A stretch of DNA of 62,912 bases, filler included, from Pelomyxa schiedti (Eukaryota > Protista > Evosea), in the NCBI GenBank assembly GCA_020536535.1. It is 9 parts of 9 records of this genome, joined end to end, with 100 filler letters (N's around TTAATTAATTAA, not from the genome) between each part and the next. Parts side by side here need not be neighbours in the genome. Positions count along the whole stretch, not along the records: positions 1 to 14,047 come from JAHLWZ010000019.1; 8 more parts are not named here. One strand, written 5' to 3'. The translations under genes and the position numbers were made by a program. Within the stretch, counting starts at the first letter, position 1, and the number at the start of each line of letters is the position of its first letter. The notes under the pieces were generated by a model. It did no database searches and was not told the DNA's origin. It saw nothing but the letters and a program-made list of their open reading frames with translations. Positions 1 through 14,047 of this stretch are shown here, in pieces.

Positions 1-33
1 ACTTATTTCTTTTAAAATAAAAGAAGTAAGGGT

Positions 34-249
34 ACCTCCGTGACGCAGTTGCATTGTGGTCGGTGATGCGGCCGAGTCACCGAGGGTGCTGGACACGTCG
101 CACCCATAATCCGCGTCCACGACCTGCAGCGAGCACGACTGCGCCGTCGCCCACCGCGATTCCGCGAACGTGGTGCTGGCCGCCGGCTGTCCAATCGCCA
201 ACAACAAAAAATACACACAACCCACCACCTTCAACCGGGCTTCATTCAT
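34..249 (-). CDS. First exon of a probable secreted protein; gene continues off the window
   Basis: ATG at 249 reads MNEARLKVVGCVYFLLLAIGQPAASTTFAESRW... (signal-peptide-like), then a GT donor at ~33 and AT-rich intron-like sequence. Confidence 0.4.
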
Positions 250-331
250 CCCAAGCAAACACGTACGTATCTTTGTTCGCCTTTCTTGGAAACGAAATGA
301 TGGGTTGGTGTGGTGATGAGGGTATTAGTGG

Positions 332-2960
332 TTATTCCATGTCCATGCTCTCAGCCCCAGAAGTGGTTCTAATGATACTGCCGTTAGTTTTCTTCTCCTT
401 TTCCTTGTCATCCTCATCCTTCTTTTTTTGCTCCTTGTCCGTCTCTTCTTCAGCCCCCTCATCCTCGTCCTCATCATCCTCATCAGAGCGGAGCTCGTCG
501 GGGGCATATTGTTCAAGCAGCTTGGTTGCTATTGAGACGAGGGGGTGGCTGCTGTTGTGGGCCCACAGTGCGCTCACGGCATCCAACAGGCAAGAATTTG
601 TTGCCCAAATCTTGTTTGGAGTTTCTGTGTCTGTGGCAAGAATGGTTTGAAGTGCCTGGCATTTCCAGTTAATGTATTTGAAGAAGTGAATGGGGGCAAG
701 GAACGCATACTGTGAGCATGGCAACAAGGAGTTTGGCCTCGGCTGCATTGTAACAGTCATGCTCCAGGAGTTCCGCAAATGGTGCGACTATTCCCAAAGA
801 AATCATGTACCTGTCGGAATGTGATCACCCTTTGTGGTTGAAATACCAGCACGGTGCGGTGCTGGTATGGTCATACTGAATTATTTCGGGGTTGTTTGTT
901 TCAATGCAGTTGCAGATAACCCAGCACGCTTCACGGCGAATCACCATATCGCCTGATGACAAGCATTTCACAACGTGTGGAACAACCCCACTTTTGCAAA
1001 GCGTTGCCACTTGTTCCCTGTGGGCGGTGAGGATATCATTGGTTGTATATTATTATTATTTCGAAAGCATACATTGTGCCACTGGCAAGGTTTGAGAGCT
1101 GTGTATTGCGGATGGAAAAGATCAGATCATATCAGGACAGAGAAAAGAGTGCGGGGGTGTTTTTGTGATGATACACACCACCCAGCATGACTCCTTCTTC
1201 AGATCTTTCTTGCTCCCGATCAGACTGCATGCAGAAAAATAAAAGAACAGTAAGAAGAAGGATGCAGTTTATACAAGGGTGTAACAGCCTGAAAAATCCC
1301 GGCGTCAATCAGGACCTGTGTGAGAAACTTGTGATTGAATCGAAGGAGTAGATGATGTGTTGTTGCTTTTCTTTACCTGAGCTTCTTCAGAACTGTGGAG
1401 TTTGATGTTAGCGGCGTTTGTTGTGAGTGTGAATTGAAATTAAATAATTAATTTCACAAAGGGATGAATGTATTTATTGAGTTTGGAGTGATGCAAACCT
1501 TTGGGTGGCAACATCTCCCAATGCTCGCAGAGCAGGAATTTGCAGGTTGTGATTGTTTACCTGGTTGTAGAATGAGTTAAATGTGATAAGGATAAGTTGG
1601 TAATTGCATACGGAAAGAATCTGGACAAGTGTGGGTATAATTCTCCCAGTGGATATGATCAACTTGACACAGGGAAGAGAATCGGACAAGTAAGACAAGG
1701 CCCTGGCAGAATCCATTTGGGTTAATGCTGTCACATTATTTTTTTTTAGGGTGTTGTCTTTTACCAGATAGCATCTGTAATCACGTCCACATCGTTGCAT
1801 TGGAGCAGAGCTTCAAGCGTGGGCATAAAAGAAACTGATTCACCAGGACCTATGAGCCTCCTTAAAAAAAGAAAGTGAACAACGAAGGCGCACTTGGTTG
1901 GAAATAGGAAACATCAGGAGTTGGCTTCCCTCGGCAACCATTGGAAAGAGCCCATGTCTGGAGGGGAAGATAGTCCAAGGAAGTCATGTGGAGGGGTATG
2001 GTGCATACTGCATTCCTCAGGAATGTCATTTGATTCGGGAATCTGATCATTGCTTTGAGCAATGCCGGGAAAAAACCCAATTGAATCATGTAATCCCTCC
2101 GTGCAATACCGTCTCCACAGATGTTTCCCAGTGCCCATGCTGCCTGTGTGTGTTGTGTTAATAATGGTGCTTAGGCATAACGCGCGATTGTTGGTTGCGT
2201 ACGGACCTGTTCACAAACATTCACATTCGGACTTGAGGAGAGCAGGGCAATGACTTGTGGCCCAATTCCACATTTGATCACTTCCTCTGTCTGTTCTGTG
2301 CTGCCACTGCAAACTTGACAAATTAACACACCAGTGGTTGGTTAATCCGAGTGAAATTGAGAGAACAGAAGTACAGACTATTTGCCAAGGCCCAAAGAGC
2401 TTCACATTGAAAATTCGGATCATCTGACTGAACAATAAGTACGCTGTATTTCAAAACACACATACACACCAGAGATAAAAACTGAATGAGACGCGGAACA
2501 ACGCCGGACTTGATGACTTCGTCAATGGGTGGTTCTACAACTACAAAATAATAATGTTCATCACCAATTAATTGTATTATATACATTTGCAATGTTCAAT
2601 AACAGTGAATACCACTTGGGGAACTGAGCATCTTTCTGATTTGAACAGTTCCAGTGAACGCGACGTTGCGATCGCTGGAGTTTGCCGACAAAGCTGCCCC
2701 AGCAACGGTCGTCGTTGGTGCAAGTTCCACCATCCCCGACGTGACCGTGGCTGTTGTTGTTTGTGAGCCTGTTGCATCACCACCACCAGATCCAGATCCA
2801 GATCTCGTGGTTGCATTGCCTCCACCACCATCTTGTTGCGTTTGTCGTTGTCTGTGTTGCTCGTCCCCCCGCTGTTGCTGTGGCGCATTTCCGGAAGCCT
2901 CCTCGTCAAATCTTCGTATTTATTGTTAGTTTGTCTCCCTCTCGACATTGAATCTAGCAT
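332..2960 (-). CDS. Importin-alpha-like ARM-repeat protein, copy 1 (multi-exon, no IBB domain, start uncertain)
   Basis: Spliced exons give PPIDEVIKSGVVPRLIQFLS, EALWALAN, AAWALGNICGD, TWALSNGCRGKPTP, ALSYLSD, PALRALGDVAT, REACWVICN and an acidic tail. The ATG seen in copy 2 (MDEEE) is TTT here; the next in-frame ATG is at 2733. Confidence 0.85.
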
Positions 2961-3008
2961 CTGTTACGCCCATCATCACAGAACAACGACTTTCCCGAAG
3001 AACAAAAA

Positions 3009-4454
3009 ATGTCGTTTCGAGTGACGGGGTGCGTTTCCGCTCGCGACCAATTCGTTGCGTTGGCTGTGGTCCTGGCTTCATCGTCGTCGTCGCGTCGTCG
3101 TTCATCGGCAACATCATCAGCACCAGCAATAGAAACAGCAACCACAACCCCAGCCACTTTGTGCAGTACTGCTGAAAATGTGGGTGGTAGTAGTGGTGGT
3201 GGTGGTGGTGGTTGTGTTGCATTGAATGAGAGGGTACTAGTACCATCAGCATCAGCAGCAGCGAGGATGCTGCCATGGTCTGTGATGGCCCGCATTGGCC
3301 GCGAGTGGGTCACTGCAACGGCGAGGAGGGTGGCCCTGAAGATGCTGTGTGATGATAGCACGGTGTCACAGTACCACATGGTGTGGGTGGTCGTTGGGGT
3401 GTCCCACACCCTCGGGGTCACTGAGGGGCCCAGGGCTGTGGATTACCTTGGCATGTTCAGCCTCGTGTGTGGGTTCATGGCTCATGGTCGCTCGGCTCTG
3501 GTCTGCAGAACTGGGTTCTGTCCCGGTCTGGATGTGATGGTGACTGATGCTGCTGCTGATTCTTGTGGTGCCGGTGGTGTTGGTGGTGGGAGAGGGGCAA
3601 AGGGGGAAGTTGGTGTGACTGGAGTGGAACTTGGGGTGAGGGAAGAACAAAGGAGGTCTCTCTCTGTGTGTTCTGATTTGTTGCTGCACTGGTTCTGCTG
3701 CAATGACAGGTGGGTGGTTGCGCGGTTTCCGGGAGTGGATGAGCTGAGTGTGTGGAGGATGAGTGGTGGTTTGTTCCCAGTGACTGTTCATCCACTCCAG
3801 GTGAAGTTTCCAGAAATTCCTTGCAGAGAAGGTGACAAGTTGAGGATGAAGTTCACAGTCACACAGAGAGGCGGTGTGATTGGGAACGGAAATGAGCTGT
3901 GCGTGCTGAGGGGACTCCAGTATGATTGCTGGAGTATTGAAGTTGTGGACCTGGAGAAAACATACAACAGTGGGAAGATGGTGGTGGTGTGGAGTACAAG
4001 CATTCAGCTTCCCTACTCTGCTGGTGATTTCCATTTCTACATCATGAGCCCAAACCAAGGCGGTCTCTTTGTTCTCTTTTACACAACAGGAGACAAAGCA
4101 GTGCTCGTGGATGTGATGTCAGGCTCAATGTCAGAGTTCAGCAGTTTCTGTGTCCAGCCTGTGAGTGATTCTTACATCCTTGTTTTCAAAACCGCAAGAC
4201 ATGCTCAAGTCTTTCACGTTGCTGATGCGCAGCAGCAAAGGAACCCAGTGAAGGATTGGCTGATAACAGACACCACCATGCAGCTGGGATCACGCCTTGG
4301 CATGGTGTTCACATCAACGGCTGAGTCCTTCAGTTACAGGAACACAGTCAAATTCTATGATGCGCCAACTGGATTCTTCATGTTTTCACTGTACTCGAGG
4401 TCCTGTGGCACTCGTCCAACTGTTTTCCTTGAGGTGGATTCTGACCATCACTGA
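3009..4454 (+). CDS. Intronless family member A1 (481 aa), N-terminal F-box/SOCS-like motif plus beta-rich domain
   Basis: Single ORF with family motifs ARDQFVAL, IGREWV, VSHTLGV, NDRWVV, VVDLEKT, YDAPTG. Confidence 0.85.
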   Translation: MSFRVTGCVSARDQFVALAVVLASSSSSRRRSSATSSAPAIETATTTPATLCSTAENVGGSSGGGGGGCVALNERVLVPSASAAARMLPWSVMARIGREWVTATARRVALKMLCDDSTVSQYHMVWVVVGVSHTLGVTEGPRAVDYLGMFSLVCGFMAHGRSALVCRTGFCPGLDVMVTDAAADSCGAGGVGGGRGAKGEVGVTGVELGVREEQRRSLSVCSDLLLHWFCCNDRWVVARFPGVDELSVWRMSGGLFPVTVHPLQVKFPEIPCREGDKLRMKFTVTQRGGVIGNGNELCVLRGLQYDCWSIEVVDLEKTYNSGKMVVVWSTSIQLPYSAGDFHFYIMSPNQGGLFVLFYTTGDKAVLVDVMSGSMSEFSSFCVQPVSDSYILVFKTARHAQVFHVADAQQQRNPVKDWLITDTTMQLGSRLGMVFTSTAESFSYRNTVKFYDAPTGFFMFSLYSRSCGTRPTVFLEVDSDHH

Positions 4455-4634
4455 ATAAACCAAATTGATTATTGCTTCAATGGCTTCTTAGTGACACAAC
4501 TAAGTACTTGCAACCTTTGCACCCAAAACTGAACGTTGGGGGTGTGTACAGTTCGTTCTGTTTGCAACACTGACAGAAGTGGGTCTTTCCCTCCCTGTGC
4601 AGTTGGCTGTAGCTCCTGGAGGGAAAAAAAAAAG

Positions 4635-4772
4635 TCCGGCAGCTGGGACTTGAACCCAGGACTTCCAGCTTTGGACTCTGGCGCTCTTCCTGAACATCCC
4701 GATTCAATCAGTGGCCTCGAAGAGGTGTCGGTTGGATTGGTTGGGGACTGGCGTTCACTGAGCTACTGCCGG
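4635..4772 (-). ncRNA. tRNA-like gene (CCA at anticodon position) with a ~65-nt hairpin inserted in the D-loop
   Basis: Minus strand: CCGGCAG TA GCTC [73-nt D-loop] GAGC G CCAGA GTCCAAA GCTGG AAGTC CTGGG TTCAAGT CCCAG CTGCCGG A, then C and T10. Acceptor 7/7, D 4/4, T 5/5 paired; A-box and B-box intact. Confidence 0.8.
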
Positions 4773-4935
4773 CATGGTTTTGGGTTTTAACGCCGTTAGT
4801 TTAACCACCAGTTTTTTTCAGGATGTGAATTGTGGGGACCGATACTCTCAAATTAAGCAAAGAATTGGAACTCGGGTTTGATGGGAAAACACTTTCTCCG
4901 AACATCGAAAACCCACTGTTTAGTTAGCTGTGGCC

Positions 4936-5657
4936 ATGTCGTTTCGAGTCACCGGGTGCGTCTACGCTCGCGATCAATTCCTTGCATTGGCCGCGGTCAA
5001 CCTAGCTTCGTCGCAGTCTCCGTCGACGACGTCATCGACCACAACAGCCGCCGCCGCCGCCGTCGTCATTCCATGGTCGGTGATGGCTCGTATTGGCCGG
5101 GAGTGGGTCACCGCGACGGCGAGGAGGGTGGCCCTGAAGATGACGTGCGACGACGACCCATCGTCGCCGTACCACATGGTGTGGGTGGTCGTGGGGGTGT
5201 CCCACACCCTCGGGGTCACAGAGGGCCCCAGGGCCGTGGATTACCTTGGCCCAGGCAGACTCGTATGTGGGTTCATGGCCCATGGAAGCTCGGCCCTTGT
5301 GTGCAGAACTGGGCTGAATCCTGGTCTGGATGTGATGGTGACTGATGCTGCTGCTGATTCTTGTGGTGTCGGTGGTGTTGGTGGTGGGAGAGGGGCAAAG
5401 GGGGAAGTTGTCGTGACTGGAGTGGAACTTGGGGTGAGTGATGACCAGAGGAAGTCTCTGTCATTGTGTTCTGATTTGTTGCTGCACTGAAATTTCCAGA
5501 TACTCCTGGCAGAGAAGGTGACAATTTGAGGATGTGGTTCACAGTCACACAGAGAGGTGGTGTGATTGAGAATGGAAATGAGCTGTGTGTCTTGAGGGGG
5601 TTGCAGTGCGATTGCTGGCGTGTTGAAATTGTGGACCTGGAGAAAACATACAGCAGT
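4936..5657 (+). pseudogene. Intronless family member B1, disrupted by a 112-bp deletion creating TGA at 5488-5490; runs into a scaffold gap
   Basis: Near-identical to 9455-10774 but lacks the segment equivalent to 10003-10114. Its last 121 bp match 13381-13501. Confidence 0.8.
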
Positions 5658-5757
5658 NNNNNNNNNNNNNNNNNNNNNNNNNNNNNNNNNNNNNNNNNNN
5701 NNNNNNNNNNNNNNNNNNNNNNNNNNNNNNNNNNNNNNNNNNNNNNNNNNNNNNNNN

Positions 5758-7427
5758 AAAAGAACAGTAAGAAGAAGGATGCAGTTTATACAAGGGTGTA
5801 ACAGCCTGAAAAATCCCGGCGTCAATCAGGACCTGTGTGAGAAACTTGTGATTGAATCGAAGGAGTAGATGATGTGTTTTTGCTTTTCTTTACCTGAGCT
5901 TCTTCAGAACTGTGGAGTTTGATGTTAGCGCTTGTTGTGAGTGTGAATTGAAATTAAATAATTAATTTCACAAAGGGATGAATGTATTTAGTGAGCTTGG
6001 AGTGATGCAAACCTTTGGGTGGCAACATCTCCCAATGCTCGCAGAGCAGGAATTTGCAGGTTGTGATTATTTACCTGGTTGTAGAATGAGTTAAATGTGA
6101 TAAGGATAAGTTGGTAATTGCATACGGAAAGAATCTGGACAAGTGTGGGTATAATTCTCCCGGTGGATATGATCAACTTGACACAGGGAAGAGAATCGGA
6201 CAAGAAGACAAGGCCCTGGCAGAATCCATTTGGGTTAATGCTGTCACATTGCAAGAAGGGAATTATTTTTTTTAGGGTGTTGTCTTTTACCAGATAACAT
6301 CTGTAATCACATCCACATCGTTACATTGGAGCAGAGCTTCAAGCGTGGGCATAAAAGAAACTGATTCACCAGGACCTATGAGCCTCCTTAAAAAAAGAAA
6401 GTGAACAACGAAGGCGCACTTGGTTGGAAATAGGAAACATCGGGAGTTGGCTTCCCTCGGCAACCATTGGAAAGAGCCCATGTCTGGAGGGGAAGAAAGC
6501 CCAAGGAAGTCATGTGGAGGGTATGGTGCATACTGCATTCCTCAGGAATGTCATTTGATTCGGGAATCTGATCATTGCTTTGAGCAATGCCGGGAAAAAA
6601 CCCAATTGAATCATGTAATCCCTCCGTGCAATACCGTCTCCACAGATGTTTCCCAGTGCCCATGCTGCCTGTGTGTGTTGTGTTAATAATGGTGCTTAGG
6701 CATAACGCGCGATTGTTGGTTGCGTACGGACCTGTTCACAAACATTCACATTCGGACTTGAGGAGAGCAGGGCAATGACTTGTGGCCCAATTCCACATTT
6801 GATCACTTCCTCTGTCTGTTCTGTGCTGCCACTGCAAACTTGACAAATTAACACACCAGTGGTTGGTTAATCCGAGTGAAATTGAGAGAACAGAAGTACA
6901 GACTATTTGCCAAGGCCCAAAGAGCTTCACATTGAAAATTCGGATCATCTGACTGAACAATAAGTACGCTGTATTTCAAAACACACATACACACCAGAGA
7001 TAAAAACTGAATGAGACGCGGAACAACGCCGGACTTGATGACTTCGTCAATGGGTGGTTCTACAACTACAAAATAATAATGTTCATCACCAATTAAATAA
7101 TTGTATTATATACATTTGTAATGTTCAATAACAGTGAATACCACTTGGGGAACTGAGCATCTTTCTGATTTGAACAGTTCCAGTGAACGCGACGTTGCGA
7201 TCGCTGGAGTTTGCCGCCGAAGCTGCCCCAGCAACGGTCGTCGTTGGTGCAAGTGCCACCATCCCCGACGTGACCGTGGTTGTTGTTTGTGAGCCTGTTG
7301 CATCACCACCACCAGATCCAGATCTCGTGGTTGCATTGCCGGCACCATCTTGTTGCGTTTGTCGTTGTCTGTGTTGCTCCCCCCGCTGTTGCTGTGGCGC
7401 ATTTCCGCATGCCTCCTCCTCGTCCAT
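5758..7427 (-). CDS. Importin-alpha-like protein, copy 2 (3' end lost in gap; in-frame ATGs at 7427 and 7487)
   Basis: Close copy of 1241-2960 with small indels. N-terminus MDEEEACGNAPQQQ...RNVAFTGTVQIRKMLS, no IBB. Confidence 0.85.
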
Positions 7428-7525
7428 CCTTCTCGTATTTATTTCGACTTGTTGGTTTTTCTCAACTCTCGATATTGAATCTAGCATCTGTTACGCCCAT
7501 CATCAACTTTCCCGAAGAACAAAAA

Positions 7526-8968
7526 ATGTCGTTTCGAGTGACGGGGTGCGTTTCCGCTCGCGACCAATTCGTTGCGTTGGCTGTGGTCCTGGCTTCATCG
7601 TCGTCGTCGCGTCGTTCATCGGCAACATCATCAGCACCAGCAATAGAAACAGCAACCACAACCCCAGCCACTTTGTGCAGTACTGCTGAAAATGTGGGTG
7701 GTAGTAGTGGTGGTGGTGGTGGTGGTTGTGTTGCATTGAATGAGAGGGTACTAGTACCATCAGCATCAGCAGCAGCGAGGATGCTGCCATGGTCTGTGAT
7801 GGCCCGCATTGGCCGCGAGTGGGTCACTGCAACGGCGAGGAGGGTGGCCCTGAAGATGCTGTGTGATGATAGCACGGTGTCACAGTACCACATGGTGTGG
7901 GTGGTCGTTGGGGTGTCCCACACCCTCGGGGTCACTGAGGGGCCCAGGGCTGTGGATTACCTTGGCATGTTCAGCCTCGTGTGTGGGTTCATGGCTCATG
8001 GTCGCTCGGCTCTGGTCTGCAGAACTGGGTTCTGTCCCGGTCTGGATGTGATGGTGACTGATGCTGCTGCTGATTCTTGTGGTGCCGGTGGTGTTGGTGG
8101 TGGGAGAGGGGCAAAGGGGGAAGTTGGTGTGACTGGAGTGGAACTTGGGGTGAGGGAAGAACAAAGGAGGTCTCTCTCTGTGTGTTCTGATTTGTTGCTG
8201 CACTGGTTCTGCTGCAATGACAGGTGGGTGGTTGCGCGGTTTCCGGGAGTGGATGAGCTGAGTGTGTGGAGGATGAGTGGTGGTTTGTTCCCAGTGACTG
8301 TTCATCCACTCCAGGTGAAGTTTCCAGAAATTCCTTGCAGAGAAGGTGACAAGTTGAGGATGAAGTTCACAGTCACACAGAGAGGCGGTGTGATTGGGAA
8401 CGGAAATGAGCTGTGCGTGCTGAGGGGACTCCAGTATGATTGCTGGAGTATTGAAGTTGTGGACCTGGAGAAAACATACAACAGTGGGAAGATGGTGGTG
8501 GTGTGGAGTACAAGCATTCAGCTTCCCTACTCTGCTGGTGATTTCCATTTCTACATCATGAGCCCAAACCAAGGCGGTCTCTTTGTTCTCTTTTACACAA
8601 CAGGAGACAAAGCAGTGCTCGTGGATGTGATGTCAGGCTCAATGTCAGAGTTCAGCAGTTTCTGTGTCCAGCCTGTGAGTGATTCTTACATCCTTGTTTT
8701 CAAAACCGCAAGACATGCTCAAGTCTTTCACGTTGCTGATGCGCAGCAGCAAAGGAACCCAGTGAAGGATTGGCTGATAACAGACACCACAATGCAGCTG
8801 GGATCACGCCTTGGCATGGTCTTCACATCAACGGCTGAGTCCTTCAGTTACAGGAACACAGTCAAATTCTATGATGCACCAACTGGATTCTTCATGTTTT
8901 CACTGTACTCGAGGTCCTGTGGCACTCGTCCAACTGTTTTCCTTGAGGTGGATTCTGACCATCACTGA
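7526..8968 (+). CDS. Intronless family member A2 (480 aa)
   Basis: Identical to 3009-4454 apart from one Ser codon and a few synonymous changes. Confidence 0.85.
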   Translation: MSFRVTGCVSARDQFVALAVVLASSSSSRRSSATSSAPAIETATTTPATLCSTAENVGGSSGGGGGGCVALNERVLVPSASAAARMLPWSVMARIGREWVTATARRVALKMLCDDSTVSQYHMVWVVVGVSHTLGVTEGPRAVDYLGMFSLVCGFMAHGRSALVCRTGFCPGLDVMVTDAAADSCGAGGVGGGRGAKGEVGVTGVELGVREEQRRSLSVCSDLLLHWFCCNDRWVVARFPGVDELSVWRMSGGLFPVTVHPLQVKFPEIPCREGDKLRMKFTVTQRGGVIGNGNELCVLRGLQYDCWSIEVVDLEKTYNSGKMVVVWSTSIQLPYSAGDFHFYIMSPNQGGLFVLFYTTGDKAVLVDVMSGSMSEFSSFCVQPVSDSYILVFKTARHAQVFHVADAQQQRNPVKDWLITDTTMQLGSRLGMVFTSTAESFSYRNTVKFYDAPTGFFMFSLYSRSCGTRPTVFLEVDSDHH

Positions 8969-9215
8969 ATAAACCAAATTGATTATTGCTTCTTAGTGTC
9001 ACAACTAAGTACTTGCAACCTTTGCACCCAAAACTGAACGTTCAGCAGTTGGGGGTGTGTACAGTGTGGAGTTCGTTCTGTTTGCAACACTGACAGAAGT
9101 GGGTCTTTCCCTCCCTGTGAAGTTGGAAAACGAGAACACGGAACTGCAGCTTACAAAGTACTTTTCCTGGTACGACTACCCCTGTATCACTGCAAGCGGA
9201 GGGGGAAAAAAAAAG

Positions 9216-9323
9216 TCCGGCAGCTGGGACTTGAACCCAGGACTTCCAGCTTTGGACTCTGGAGCTCTTCCTGAACATCCCGATTAAATCAGTGGCCTCG
9301 AAGAGGTGTCGGTTGGATTGGTT
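9216..9323 (-). pseudogene. 5'-truncated copy of the D-loop-insert tRNA-like gene
   Basis: Same 3' half and most of the insert as 4635-4742. The 37 bp carrying the 5' acceptor strand and A-box are deleted between TGGTT repeats; G26 is changed to T. Confidence 0.75.
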
Positions 9324-9454
9324 CTGGGTTTCCACGCCGTTCTTTTAATCACCAGTTTTTTTCAGGATGTGAATTGTGGGTACAGAGACTCAAATTTATC
9401 GTTTGAGGAACACTTTCTCCGAACATCAACAACCCACTTCTAGTAGACGTGGCC

Positions 9455-10774
9455 ATGTCGTTTCGAGTGACGGGGTGCGTCTACGCTCGCGATCAATTCC
9501 TTGCATTGGCCGCGGTCAACCTAGCTTCGTCGCAGTCTCCGTCGACTACGTCATCGACCACACCAGCCGCCGCCGCCGCCGTTCCATGGTCGGTGATGGC
9601 TCGTATTGGCCGTGAGTGGGTCGCCGCGACGGCGAGGAGGGTGGCCCTGAAGATGACGTGCGACGACGAGCCATCGTCGCGGTACCACATGGTGTGGGTG
9701 GTCGTGGGGGTGTCCCACACCCTCGGGGTCACAGAGGGCCCCAGGGCCGTGGATTACCTTGGCCCAGGCAGACTCGTATGTGGGTTCATGGCTCATGGAA
9801 GCTCTGCCCTTGTGTGCAGAACTGGGCTGAATCCCGGCCTGGATGTGATGGTGACTGATGCTGCTGCTGATTCTTGTGGTGCCGGTGGTGAGGGTGATGG
9901 GAGAGGGGCAAAGGGGGAAGTTGGTGTGACTGGAGTGGAACTTGGGGTGAGCGATGACCAGAGGAGGTCTCTGTCATTGTGTTCTGATTTGCTGCTGCAC
10001 TGGTTCTGCTGCAATGACAGGTGGGTGGTTGCGCGGTTTCCGGGAGTGGATGAGCTGAGTGTGTGGAGGATGAGTGGTGGTTTGTTCCCAGTGACTGCTC
10101 ATCCAGTCCAGGTGAAATTTCCAGATACTCCTGGCAGAGAAGGTGACAATTTGAGGATGAAGTTCACAGTCACACAGAGAGGTGGTGTGATTGAGAATGG
10201 AAATGAGCTGTGTGTCTTGAGGGGGTTGCAGTGCGATTGCTGGCGTGTTGAAATTGTGGACCTGGAGAAAACATACAACAGTGGGAAGATGGTGGTGGTG
10301 TGGAGCTCGAGAATAAAGCTTCCCTTCTCTGCTGGTCGTTGCCCTGGCGATTTCCACATCATGAGCCCAGACAAAGGCGGTCTCTTTGTTCTCTTTTACA
10401 CAACAAGTGACAAAGCAGTGCTCGTGGATGTGATGTACGGCTCGGTGTCAGAGTTCAGCAGCTTCTGTGTCCAGCCTGTGAGTGATAGTTACATCCTTGT
10501 TTTCAAAACCGATCAGCATGCTCAAGTTTTCCACGTTGAGGATGCCTCACAACAGCAAAGGCACCCAGTGAAGGATTGGCTGATCACAGGTGCCACCATG
10601 CGACTGGGATCGCGCCTTGGCATGGTGTTCACATCAACAGCTGAGTCCTTCGCTTACAGGAACACAGTCAAATTCTATGATGCGCCAACCGGATTCTTCA
10701 TGTTTTCACTGTACTCGAGGTCCTGTGTCACTCGTCCAACCGTTTTCCTTGAGGTCGACTCTGACCATCATTGA
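9455..10774 (+). CDS. Intronless family member B2 (439 aa)
   Basis: ARDQFLAL, IGREWV, VSHTLGV, NDRWVV, IVDLEKT, YDAPTG; paralog of A1/A2. Confidence 0.85.
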   Translation: MSFRVTGCVYARDQFLALAAVNLASSQSPSTTSSTTPAAAAAVPWSVMARIGREWVAATARRVALKMTCDDEPSSRYHMVWVVVGVSHTLGVTEGPRAVDYLGPGRLVCGFMAHGSSALVCRTGLNPGLDVMVTDAAADSCGAGGEGDGRGAKGEVGVTGVELGVSDDQRRSLSLCSDLLLHWFCCNDRWVVARFPGVDELSVWRMSGGLFPVTAHPVQVKFPDTPGREGDNLRMKFTVTQRGGVIENGNELCVLRGLQCDCWRVEIVDLEKTYNSGKMVVVWSSRIKLPFSAGRCPGDFHIMSPDKGGLFVLFYTTSDKAVLVDVMYGSVSEFSSFCVQPVSDSYILVFKTDQHAQVFHVEDASQQQRHPVKDWLITGATMRLGSRLGMVFTSTAESFAYRNTVKFYDAPTGFFMFSLYSRSCVTRPTVFLEVDSDHH

Positions 10775-10949
10775 AATTTAAAAAAAAAAAATTGCGTGGT
10801 TCCAATTTGAAACTGGGGCGGATCGGTCCTGACACTTATAATCAGCCACTCACAGGTTTTCCTAATCACGGAAAAAGTGTGTCGGAACCCTGCAATCAGG
10901 ATCTTCTAGATTCCCACTCTGAGTTTTCATTGACTTGCACCTCAGCAAG

Positions 10950-12047
10950 ATGTTGGGTGGTGCCATTACCACCACGAGTTCATGTTGTTGTTCTGTTGTT
11001 GATAGTTGTTCGTTTGCAAACGTGAATATCGGCGAGTGCATCGCGGAGGGCATCGTTCGTGGCACCAACGACTTGGCGACGTTGGTTGCACTCGATCGTG
11101 TGAATAAGCTGTTTCACTCGTTTGCTGCCATGTACGAAGCTCCACTCTCTCTCTCAGTTCTTTTATTTCTCACATTTACGTTCTTGGCTTTCAAGCAAAC
11201 TGAAGACACTTCGATTGCAGCTCGGTGGATTTGGTGTGAAGTGGCTGACAGAACGTTCAGAGTCTGTTGATTGTGATGGGATCGCAGCACAGCACGGAAT
11301 CGAAGTGTGTGTGATTGGTGCCAGTGGAACTGGAAAAACATGCATTGCACAAAGATTCATTGGGAAGAACTTCTTCGAATTCCAAGAGTCCACGATTGGT
11401 GTGGATTTCTGGATTACAAAAGCGCCTGTCAGGGGCAGCAGTGTCAAGCTGTACATTTGGGGTATGCCATTCCACAGTTATTCCTTTTCTTAAAAACAAA
11501 ACAGATACAAGTGGAAAATGCAGATACAACACAACTGTGTGTGTTTCTTTTTTCCCCCCTTTCCTCAATGCCTCTCAGTGGAGCTGCAGATCAGCAGTGA
11601 TTCTGCTTGTCTATGATATCACCTGCCTTTCTTCTCTCAATTCACTCATTGTAAGAATCGCTGAAATTCGTGGATTTAATCATGTTGGAAAGGTGAATGA
11701 CAACCCCCACACCAAAACTCATCACCCTCACACTCAACACACAGTTACTTCTGTGTGGAAACAAGGCAGATCTTTTTGACAATCAACAGAGCTCTGCAAC
11801 AGCCTGTGTGGCTTCAGCAAAAACTATTGTCACATATTCACAAGGGCTTGAGTTTGCCAAAGCCAACCACTGTGATGGATTCGTTGAGGTGTCAGCAAAG
11901 ACCATGAGGAACATGCCTCAACTCATCACAGCCATTGGTCTCCTGGCACTTGAAGGTGCTCCTTCTCCTGTTGATTACCATACTTACCCACTTGGAGGTG
12001 TAATTACAAAGAAGAAGAGCCGCAAACCTGAATGTGCATTGGCCTGA
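10950..12047 (+). CDS. Rab-like small GTPase with N-terminal F-box-like motif and CaaX (multi-exon)
   Basis: Exon 1 ...NIGECIAEGIVRGTNDLATLVALDRVNKLFHSFA. Splicing (GT 11133 to ttcaag) joins in frame to GASGTGKT, STIGVDF, WDTSGK, GNKAD, EVSAK and C-terminal CALA*. Confidence 0.75.
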
Positions 12048-12243
12048 CTCAAGTGTCACCTTCTGTGTATAAGGTTATTTTATTCGCATCGTCGACACCA
12101 CCCACTACTTATGTTTGATGTCATTGTTGTTTGGTTGTAACTCCTCTTGCTTCTGTTGCGGAATTGCAGCCTCATTTTATGTGAAATCAGATCATGGAGC
12201 ATCCATTATTATCAGCATAAGCAAGGTTGCCGAAAAATTGAAA

Positions 12244-13280
12244 ATGAGCAGCAAAGGGCGACAGGGCAAAGTTGCAGTGATGGGAGCGAGTGGTGTTGGA
12301 AAGACCTCGTTGGTTGAGAGGTATGTTCGTGATAGAATCACCGTCGTTTCTTTTTCCGTGGAATGTTTTGTTGTACACTACAACATTTTACTTTGAAAAG
12401 GTTCTTGCTTGAGTACTGGAGCCCAAGTGGATATTGTGGTGGATCCGAATACGAGGTATTTGAAACCACCAATTAAAAGACATTCCTCGCACACTCACTC
12501 TCATCAGTGCAGGAAACGAGTTGTTGTTGATGATGTTACTGTTGAATTGGAAGTGCTCGATTGGTGTGTATGTGCGTGCGTGTCACCACCACTGCCCTTT
12601 CACACACTCAACTGTGGTTGTTGCTGTTACCTTCCTAATACAAATTACTTACCACTGTGTGCAGTGCTGGGACTGAACAATTTACAGCAATGAGAGACCT
12701 TTAGTAAGTGTTTCCTACCTAGAAGACCTTTAGGTTCCCCTTTTTTTTCCTCATTTATAGCTTGCCGCCAGTGTAAAAAACTCCCACATTGTGCTACTTT
12801 GTTTCTCACTTGTGGATAAAGCCTCCTTGTCAGAAGTTCTCACAGTGCACTATTCCAACATCAGGGAAGTGTCCCCCGAGGTTTTAATCTGCTTTTTCTT
12901 CTTAAGTTCATTGTCAACACTCACTCAGACCATTGTTTTCCTTGTTGGTTTGAAAATGGACCTCGTTGTCACAACCTCCTCATCAGTTGTAACTTCTGTG
13001 GTTTGCTTTCCTTCTTCGTTTTGGGAAAGTGTAATCACTCTCCCCTCCAGGTCACCGTGCAAGAAGCAGTTTCCATGGCCAAAAAAATGAATGCCTATGG
13101 TTACTTTCAATGCAGGTAAGGTACCATTATTCCACTCAGCTTTTGATTCCACCAAATCGCACTCAAAAACCACGAAAAGTTCCAAGCTTCAAGTTGGTGT
13201 TCAGGAGTTATTTGACACAGTTGCAAGAGTTGGAGTGCTTACATCCTCTCCTATTGCTGAGAAACCAAAGAAGACCGGCT
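12244..13280 (+). CDS. Divergent Ras-superfamily GTPase (Rap-like switch II, Rho-like C-terminal half); 3' end in gap
   Basis: GASGVGKT; LD(C)AGTEQFTAMRDLY; IVLLCFSLVDKASL; FLVGLKMDL; CSSKLQVGVQELFD. Confidence 0.75.
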
Positions 13281-13380
13281 NNNNNNNNNNNNNNNNNNNN
13301 NNNNNNNNNNNNNNNNNNNNNNNNNNNNNNNNNNNNNNNNNNNNNNNNNNNNNNNNNNNNNNNNNNNNNNNNNNNNNNNN

Positions 13381-13993
13381 GTTCACAGTCACACAGAGAG
13401 GTGGTGTGATTGAGAATGGAAATGAGCTGTGTGTCTTGAGGGGGTTGCAGTGCGATTGCTGGCGTGTTGAAATTGTGGACCTGGAGAAAACATACAGCAG
13501 TGGGAAGATGGTGGTGGTGTGGAGCTCGAGAATAAAGCTTCCCTTCTCTGCTGGTCGTTGCCCTGGCGATTTCCACATCATGAGCCCAGACCAAGGCGGT
13601 CTCTTTGCTCTCTTTTACACAACAAGTGACAAAGCAGTGCTCGTGGATGTGATGTACGGCTCGGTGTCAGAGTTCAGCAGCTTCTGTGTCCAGCCGGTGA
13701 GCGATTCTTACATCCTTGTTTTCAAAACCGATCAGCATGCTCAAGTTTTCCACGTTGAGGATGCATCACAACAGCAAAGGCACCCAGTGAAGGATTGGCT
13801 GATAACAGGTGCCACCATGCGACTGGGATCACGCCTTGGCATGGTGTTCACATCAACGGCTGAGTCCTTTGCTTACAGGAACACAGTGAAATTCTACGAT
13901 GCACCAACTGGATTCTTCATGTTTTCACTGTACTCGAGGTCCTGTGTCACTCGTCCAACCGTTTTCCTTGAGGTTGACTCTGACCATCATTGA
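13381..13993 (+). CDS. 3' part of an intronless family B-type gene, probably the true continuation of B1
   Basis: Shares the KTYSS variant and a 121-bp overlap with 5537-5657; ends EVDSDHH*. Confidence 0.75.
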
Positions 13994-14047
13994 AATTAAA
14001 AAAAATTGAATTGTGTTTCAAGTCAAGTGGAACAAGGTTTTGTTTGA

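Follow-up and report, generated by a model that had tools for sequence, protein, structure and literature searches.

Pelomyxa schiedti, a protist of the Evosea, appears to encode a tRNA-shaped RNA that carries a long hairpin in its D-loop. The gene lies in the first part (contig C19, JAHLWZ010000019.1, positions 1 to 14,047) of the window analyzed here, a stretch of 62,912 nucleotides (nt) with filler included that joins nine parts of nine records from the genome assembly GCA_020536535.1. It occupies 138 nt on the minus strand, and we hold with somewhat better than even confidence that it belongs to a small conserved family encoding a hairpin-bearing tRNA mimic of ~139 nt that RNA polymerase III (Pol III) makes. 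An earlier note on this DNA had left two readings side by side: either the extra sequence is a tRNA intron of a new kind, or the RNA mimics a tRNA and carries an added domain, with selection for L-shape and not for decoding. The mimic has gained support from a hairpin that is retained in the RNA, a canonical set of tertiary nucleotides, anticodons that differ between subfamilies, and a promoter of the type found at U6 and tRNA-Sec genes. A hairpin-retaining mimic is therefore favored over an unconventional intron, its main rival.

Read 5' to 3' on the minus strand, the unit begins with CCGGCAG-UA-GCUC-AG, resumes after the 67-nt hairpin with GGAA-GAGC-G-CCAGA-GUCCAAA-GCUGG, and ends with AAGUC-CUGGG-UUCAAGU-CCCAG-CUGCCGG-A, after which come a C and the run of ten T residues. 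The result is a 7/4/5/5 cloverleaf with a T-loop of the UUCRA type, a 7/5 fold, a variable loop of 4-5 nt and intact A and B boxes inside the gene. Its acceptor (CCGGCAG/CTGCCGG) and D (GCTC/GAGC) stems and its T arm (CTGGG-TTCAAGT-CCCAG) are perfectly paired, and these three stems are perfect in all four intact copies. The canonical tertiary nucleotides are all in place (U8, A14, G15-C48, G18 G19, A21, G26, G46, U54 U55 C56 A58). Two regions depart from a standard tRNA. The D-loop has 73 nt, composed of AG, the hairpin TGAAC...GTTCA and GGAA, as against a canonical 7-11 nt. In the anticodon arm, CCAG(A)/(G)CTGG, an A31.G39 mismatch and a G32 occur in all copies, so that the canonical 5-bp stem and the pyrimidine at position 32 give way to an effective 4-bp stem and a 9-nt loop with the anticodon CCA or CUA. 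The earlier note had described this unit, its stems, boxes, terminator and enlarged D-loop, as well as the abnormal anticodon arm, in the same terms. Its removable insert of 65 nt stands as a hairpin and is corrected in size, since with the closing pair it measures 67 nt and removal of 65 nt leaves U16 and A17 behind.

From the outside in, the hairpin contains the helices (U)GAAC/GUUC(A), GUCCC/GGGAU, CAAUC/GAUUG and CCUC/GAGG, the last closing the tip as CCUC-UUC-GAGG; between one helix and the next lie, in order, a bulge of 4 nt, a 4x4 loop and a 9x5 loop. The same four helices, already proposed in the earlier note, appear both in the minimum free energy (MFE) fold of the single sequence and in the RNAalifold consensus of four copies. 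The fold energy by itself is unremarkable and is no proof of structure (MFE z = -1.65; 12 of 200 shuffles fold equally well). Conservation, not energy, raises the structure above chance, because all 38 of the 38 modelled pairs are kept in each of the four intact copies and two acceptor pairs have changed in a compensatory manner.

The standard tools are blind to this gene. ARAGORN called zero tRNA genes at the unit, and Rfam returned no match to it at the gathering score. Under relaxed settings, the Rfam tRNA model aligns to 4643-4695 only, from the 3' strand of the D stem as far as the T arm, and its score of 24.9 bits (E = 0.0077) stays below the cut-off of 29.

Copies were sought throughout the 52-Mb assembly (5337 contigs) by BLAST and with R1, a covariance model built from the family. 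Four intact copies (on C19, C2236, C372 and C202) were recovered along with a deletion copy and a copy truncated by the start of contig C372. C372 carries two copies of one subfamily (CTA, below) ~11.6 kb apart, and the intervals of note on this contig are 1-58, 11669-11806 and 13998-14069. The next-best R1 matches in the whole genome are ordinary tRNAs of 72-74 nt that score at most 55 bits, and neither BLAST nor the covariance-model searches of the whole genome found the insert outside the family genes.

The family comprises two subfamilies of three copies each. The CCA subfamily, to which the C19 gene belongs, has the loop GUCCAAA and the acceptor stem CCGGCAG/CUGCCGG; the CTA subfamily, which includes the copies on C372 and C202, has the loop GUCUAAA, with the triplet CUA, and the acceptor stem CCUACAG/CUGUAGG. 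Between them G3-C70 is replaced by U-A and G4-C69 by A-U, so compensatory changes do occur among other intact copies, for which the earlier note had proposed a covariance-model search. Pairing is also preserved by a change of G.U to A-U in the hairpin and of C-G to U.G in the anticodon stem. Identity between the subfamilies is 93% in the hairpin and 86% in the tRNA body, and the variable columns of the hairpin number 1 of 36 among paired positions as compared with 9 of 32 among unpaired positions (Fisher p = 0.005). By these alignments, the hairpin is at least as conserved as the tRNA body. The genes are 86-96% identical between copies, while their flanks are 51-60% identical, apparently the level of unrelated sequence under scoring without shuffles; the exception is the 80 nt upstream, which is conserved within a subfamily.

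Both RNA subfamilies are found in the DNA sample and in the RNA sample. U6 genes number ~20 and fall into five sequence variants, HSP70 and MVP have many paralogues, and the assembly may combine two or more closely related genomes or represent a single, highly duplicated one.

A family of this kind could also arise without any function. One could propose a transcribed but idle tRNA-derived repeat, in which an insertion entered a tRNA-Tyr pseudogene that later multiplied like a young short interspersed nuclear element (SINE) or a segmental duplicate. There is more than one copy, the C19 part of the window is a recent tandem duplication, and the anticodon arm is defective by tRNA standards. Moreover, one copy is visibly decaying: the deletion derivative lacks about -11 to +33, and with it the 5' acceptor strand, the D 5' strand and box A, while it keeps the upstream promoter element and two thirds of the gene on the 3' side; AACCA flanks the deletion on either side. 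Against this stand just six copies, none with a tail or a 3' part resembling a long interspersed nuclear element and each ending at the terminator. The upstream promoter is conserved together with the gene, whereas retroposition would not carry a promoter along; the gene is strongly conserved between flanks at background level, and its substitutions are compensatory or restricted to loops. The RNA is also very abundant in comparison with the neighboring gene, and the insert occurs nowhere else in the genome. A functionless repeat is accordingly quite unlikely. The copy number, the terminator ends and the conserved upstream flank do not fit a tRNA-derived SINE, and a dispersed repeat or miniature inverted-repeat transposable element lodged in a dead tRNA was rejected on the confinement of the insert to family genes. 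The earlier note had allowed for such a dead tRNA, with no transcript, no other intact copy and an insert drawn from a dispersed repeat; instead, a transcript and intact copies exist and the insert is not a dispersed repeat.

The RNA itself was followed in assembled contigs from two random-primed single-cell RNA-seq runs labelled 'protist metagenome', which were examined over positions 4300-5060. The C19 sequence is present in two runs of one sample and partly in the two RNA runs, which come from the same study, and contigs of all four runs were compared with these positions. RNA contigs are confined to 4646-4773, with summed word depths of up to 538 and 774. Since depth is zero on both flanks (4430-4637 and 4794-5060), the signal is not DNA carry-over. 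The neighboring open reading frame (ORF) has a depth of 2-8, and in single cells the RNA ranks with the more abundant of the small transcripts. One contig (4652-4732) spans the junction between the hairpin and the 3' body by 40 nt on each side with zero mismatches, and a contig of the CTA subfamily spans the same junction at a depth of 199. A unitig within the hairpin that is common to both subfamilies has a depth of 243 as against 198.6 and 51.8 for the junction unitigs; the depth of the shared hairpin thus nearly equals those two values added together, which leaves no surplus of excised insert. What accumulates is RNA with its hairpin in place. As for its 5' end, a contig of the CTA subfamily leads out of the hairpin across CCUACAG and then reads as a template-switch oligonucleotide in reverse complement, with one extra G, and the CCA-subfamily contigs end at 4773, which together place the end of the RNA at -1/+1.

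These data bear directly on the possibility that the hairpin is an ectopic intron, cut by the tRNA splicing endonuclease or by some other activity to release 73-nt tRNAs with CCA or CUA anticodons, in which case RNA-seq would show only the unmodified precursor. Without the hairpin, the D-arm does become a textbook one (in the CTA copies, GCUC-AGUGGUUA-GAGC) and the tertiary set is complete, and an RNA beginning at +1 would fit the end-matured, intron-containing intermediates of normal pre-tRNAs. Ectopic D-loop introns are known in nuclear tRNA genes of Cyanidioschyzon merolae (PMC3728597), and the CTA copies contain a look-alike of the bulge-helix-bulge (BHB) motif made of a 4-nt bulge, GAAC/GUUC and a 2-nt bulge. 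However, a BHB scanner that recovers the genuine 37/38 intron of tRNA-Tyr found no conserved 3-4-3 motif in the family. A relaxed scan (2-4-nt bulges, one mismatch) was very noisy, and the strict motif and its conservation between subfamilies were used. The 4/4/2 look-alike is missing from the CCA copies, and cutting at it leaves AGUGAACGC joined to GUUA without G18 G19; the earlier note had likewise expected no normal D-loop from BHB cleavage or GT-AG splicing. The RNA contigs show no spliced joint and, among the loose ends listed (all but three), none of a spliced form; the 3' body is shallower than the hairpin. The ~70 other tRNA genes carry no ectopic intron, the hairpin is more conserved than the body with changes that avoid its stems, and ordinary tRNA genes lack the upstream promoter element of the family. 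With no spliced contig, no conserved BHB motif and no ectopic intron elsewhere, the intron half of the earlier alternative is disfavored, and splicing of the hairpin is considered unlikely.

Ectopic tRNA introns of C. merolae, nucleomorphs and Archaea resemble the family in having extra sequence in the D-loop of an otherwise normal tRNA gene (PMC3728597); they differ in being flanked by BHB motifs and removed, whereas the family has no conserved BHB, retains its insert in the abundant RNA and uses a promoter foreign to tRNA genes. If the hairpin were nonetheless spliced, it would represent a BHB-independent tRNA intron. The tRNA-Tyr(GTA) of this genome has a canonical 14-nt intron and is mis-called 'tRNA-???' by ARAGORN. 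Ordinary tRNA genes are densely clustered, with up to 7-8 genes per 2-3 kb (C1662, C913, C237, C213 and C2891), and C1662 contains a palindromic pair of seven-gene clusters.

The promoter sets the family apart from other tRNA genes. An upstream sequence element (USE) of the form CCCACAAT(T/G)CA is located at -64 in 5 of the 5 copies with upstream sequence, and it is accompanied by an A/T box near -30 and by G-1. In the other copies, the -30 box reads TTAAATTAA or TTTTAGTTTAA at the same place, the sequence into position 1 reads ...atg then CC or ...tcg then CC, and the terminator site holds runs of T5 to T9. Comparable upstream motifs are found at other small-RNA genes of the genome. Counted from the matched start, ACCCATAATTCA falls between about -66 and -61 in the U6 genes (at -66 in 4 of 6), which also have T/A-rich runs near -30, and the 7SL genes have CCCATAAGTATTC upstream. 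The single tRNA-Sec gene (C1146:9231-9316, 67.9 bits) combines a T14 terminator with ACCCATAAG at -65, and on account of this gene the organism has selenocysteine decoding and a USE-driven tRNA-Sec gene. The USE of the family matches those of the tRNA-Sec and U6 genes in motif class and distance. At that position it is present in 0 of 28 ordinary tRNA genes of the genome, whose promoters are of the internal type 2 only. Type-3 (SNAPc-dependent) promoters in several Diaphoretickes lineages have the USE consensus ACCCAYAW, ACCCATAA or AACCCRTAA (PMC8287931), a class that the family USE matches. Judged from its sequence, the gene combines an external type-3-like promoter with internal A and B boxes and a T-run, an arrangement shared with tRNA-Sec and vault RNA genes, and these promoter and terminator features suggest transcription by Pol III.

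A genome-wide pattern search for a USE followed at 40-70 nt by a box A of the form TRGCTCAG gave 13 matches; the tRNA-Sec gene does not fit this pattern and is missed by it. Seven have been identified, of which 4 are family members and 3 belong to an unrelated repeat. That repeat (C147:448-735 and C75:16730-16796) starts with a USE-like CCCACAATCCACTTCC, has GGATGGCTCAG 59 nt downstream and is not tRNA-like. Table 1 lists the features of the gene and its promoter.

Table 1. Features of the hairpin-bearing tRNA-like gene, its promoter and its deletion derivative in the window
Feature	Position	Strand	Remarks
Tandem-duplicate second copy, deletion derivative	9216..9355	minus	Model score 100 bits; direct repeat D15/D16
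Upstream sequence element (USE) CCCACAAT, extended CCCACAATTCACATCC	4829..4836	minus	-64 to -57; conserved among copies
A/T-rich TATA-like box TTAAACTAA	4796..4804	minus	-32 to -24; putative function
Conserved G at -1	4773	minus	Shared by the intact copies, without exception; Pol III probably starts here
tRNA-shaped transcribed unit, CCA subfamily	4635..4772	minus	138 nt; C1 = 4772, A73 = 4635; from sequence and own covariance model (173 bits)
Irregular 67-nt hairpin between D-loop positions 16 and 17	4691..4757	minus	MFE fold and RNAalifold consensus
'Anticodon' loop GUCCAAA	4670..4676	minus	CCA triplet at 4674-4672; from sequence
T10 Pol III terminator	4624..4633	minus	One base past A73; from sequence

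The following scheme may account for these features. SNAPc and Pol III would transcribe the gene from its type-3-like external promoter, with the USE at -64 and the A/T box at -30 acting as they do in U6 and tRNA-Sec genes; synthesis would start at G-1 or C1 and stop at the T-run just after A73. The product would fold into an L-shaped RNA, and the hairpin would stick out from the D-loop at position 16/17, which is exposed to solvent. In such a molecule, the tRNA body could engage tRNA-type processing, export or binding proteins, and the hairpin could be the handle for a specific partner. The RNA is most likely a non-decoding tRNA mimic. Its complete tRNA fold probably derives from tRNA-Tyr, an origin made plausible by an acceptor end (C1-G72 and A73) that is common to the family and the tRNA-Tyr of this genome, in agreement with the Tyr-type identity assigned by the earlier note. 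We infer that selection acts on the L-shaped core and leaves the anticodon free to vary. An adaptor role is argued against since the anticodon differs between subfamilies, positions 31, 32 and 39 depart from the norm, and the ribosome should have no room for an elbow arm of ~20 bp. The family is also dispensable for decoding, as there are canonical genes for tRNA-Trp(CCA), on C372 and C725, and for the intron-bearing tRNA-Tyr(GTA) elsewhere in the genome. The presence of a normal tRNA-Trp(CCA), a check raised in the earlier note, excludes the family as the sole tRNA-Trp of the genome.

A decoding role of a specialized kind has nevertheless to be weighed, in which the family would supply dedicated suppressor or recoding tRNAs, the CUA form reading UAG and the CCA form, with its opened anticodon stem, reading UGG or UGA. 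Such tRNAs would be USE-driven like tRNA-Sec, and a dedicated enzyme or factor would recognize them by the enlarged D-arm. In the case of tRNA-Sec, it is the D-arm by which the kinase tells this tRNA apart. Based on the one search for a USE followed by TRGCTCAG, with 7 of its 13 matches identified, the family is the only tRNA-shaped USE gene besides tRNA-Sec, and three copies carry the CUA anticodon in an intact structure. In addition, 4-bp anticodon stems promote stop-codon reading elsewhere (PMC13092985), and the genome encodes a second, divergent eRF1 with the motifs TASCIKS and YLCDSRF. On the other side, four HSP70 stretches of 420-460 codons contain zero in-frame stops, a canonical eRF1 (TASNIKS, YLCDNKF) is present, a CCA tRNA with a Tyr-type acceptor would mis-read UGG, and the retained elbow hairpin should, by the argument above, clash with the ribosome. 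The anticodon stem is moreover open at its lower end (31:39, with G32), whereas the stop-reading tRNA-Trp(CCA) of the Blastocrithidia type is open at the upper end, at 27:43, and has a 7-nt loop (PMC13092985). Recoding by the family is for these reasons very unlikely.

The stop-reading tRNAs with 4-bp stems from Blastocrithidia and Condylostoma share with the family a CCA anticodon and four Watson-Crick pairs in the anticodon stem (PMC13092985); the family differs in being opened at A31.G39, with a 9-nt loop and G32, and in coexisting with a normal tRNA-Trp. The four HSP70 stretches and the eRF1 motifs give no sign of a stop-codon reassignment like that of Blastocrithidia or Condylostoma. The two eRF1 genes are located at C1215:2744-3022 and C424:18043-18231, one with GTASNIKS/YLCDNKF and the other with GTASCIKS/YLCDSRF, and the divergent one could be a paralogue of altered specificity or could come from a second organism in the assembly. 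A bolder version, to which we give even less credence, makes the two subfamilies a natural recoding pair within a second tRNA-Sec-like system, with the D-arm as an identity handle for a charging, modifying or delivery factor; the divergent eRF1 (TASCIKS) could belong to such a system. If the family does decode, it would constitute a new recoding system.

Returning to the non-decoding mimic, the most concrete candidate for a partner is the vault particle, and on circumstantial grounds the family could be the vault RNA of this organism. Its candidacy stems from genes for MVP and for a TEP1-like protein with a TROVE domain in a genome where no vault RNA has been recognized. The TEP1-like gene (TROVE + DUF5920 + DUF4062) is at C807:26546-29300, and MVP repeats or loci are found on several contigs (C810, C516, C352, C518, C850 and C93). 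The Rfam Vault (RF00006) and Y_RNA models have no match in the genome, and the Vault model has none at E<=10 within 4400-5000. Vault RNAs are Pol III transcripts of ~90-140 nt that have A and B boxes like those of tRNAs, further elements upstream, and 5' and 3' ends that pair. The family has A and B boxes, a terminal stem between its 5' and 3' ends, a T-run and a size within 80-150 nt, and it is presumably made by Pol III. It therefore resembles vault RNA in size class, boxes, upstream elements and end pairing, in an organism that encodes MVP and a TEP1-like protein; it differs in being a complete cloverleaf that RF00006 does not match, and its association with vaults is putative. If the family is indeed a TEP1-bound vault RNA of this lineage, vault RNAs would be tied directly to a tRNA ancestor.

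Several observations weigh against a non-decoding mimic or its link to vaults. U33, A36-A37-A38 and the full tertiary set are equally expected of a tRNA that decodes. Contigs from random-primed libraries under-represent modified mature tRNAs and lose rare variants, and so a spliced 73-nt product could exist unseen; the RNA contigs also stop short of the 3' end and CCA. The covariation comes from four sequences of one genome, and one boundary-pattern scan of metagenome contigs found no homologue in other organisms, its single match being a chance one in a GC-rich bacterial contig. Finally, the vault link is circumstantial, the Rfam vault model is unmatched, and to our knowledge no vault RNA forms a complete cloverleaf with the conserved tertiary nucleotides.

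Other identities were considered and rejected or set aside. A retroelement primer tRNA is not indicated, as no complement of the 3' end plus CCA exists anywhere in the genome. Telomerase RNA, which would be USE-driven and would hold a C/A-rich stretch such as CCCCAACC, was set aside because the stretch differs between the co-expressed subfamilies (CCCCAACC vs CCCAACCC). A box C/D or H/ACA guide within the hairpin finds no correctly spaced C or ACA box by eye, and Rfam gives nothing at E<=10.

The C19 gene sits within a tandem duplication (1241-14047) with a period of ~4.51-4.58 kb. The duplication contains at least four paralogues of an intron-less ORF of ~480 amino acids (3009-4454, 7526-8968, 9455-10774 and 13091-13993) and fragments at 4936-5657. 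RNA contigs of an ORF paralogue cover 4300-4412 at low depth. The ORF family has no Pfam match and no credible Atlas neighbor. It is absent beside the other copies of the RNA gene, and the neighboring ORF is therefore unlinked to that gene.

Among known RNAs, tRNA-Sec resembles the family in its upstream USE or proximal sequence element (ACCCATAAG at -65 compared with CCCACAAT at -64 in the family), its internal B box, its unusual D-arm and a transcript that begins at position 1 or beside it. The family has none of the 9/4 arrangement of acceptor and T stems, the long variable arm or the UCA anticodon of tRNA-Sec, and its D-arm is a 67-nt hairpin in contrast to a 6-bp stem. The Rfam tRNA-Sec model matches only the gene on C1146 in this genome and no family copy. 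A second likeness is to the YrlA/Y-RNA-like mimics, mascRNA and viral tRNA-like structures, in which a tRNA-like module is coupled to a second, protein-binding helical module. In YrlA, the tRNA-like part is located inside the Ro-binding stem, whereas in the family it is the hairpin that is located inside the tRNA; YrlA also belongs to another domain of life, and no sequence relation between the two was found.

Mimics of tRNA are known from viruses, from bacteria (YrlA) and from a few animal transcripts. The present family combines four properties: all tertiary elements of a tRNA, a conserved helical domain grafted into the D-loop, a promoter of the U6/tRNA-Sec type, and abundance. No description of a eukaryotic, chromosomal, multicopy RNA with all four was found in the literature, and the family would take its place among the tRNA-derived Pol III non-coding RNAs. 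Since the standard tRNA finders and Rfam miss the family completely, similar genes may be overlooked in other protist genomes.

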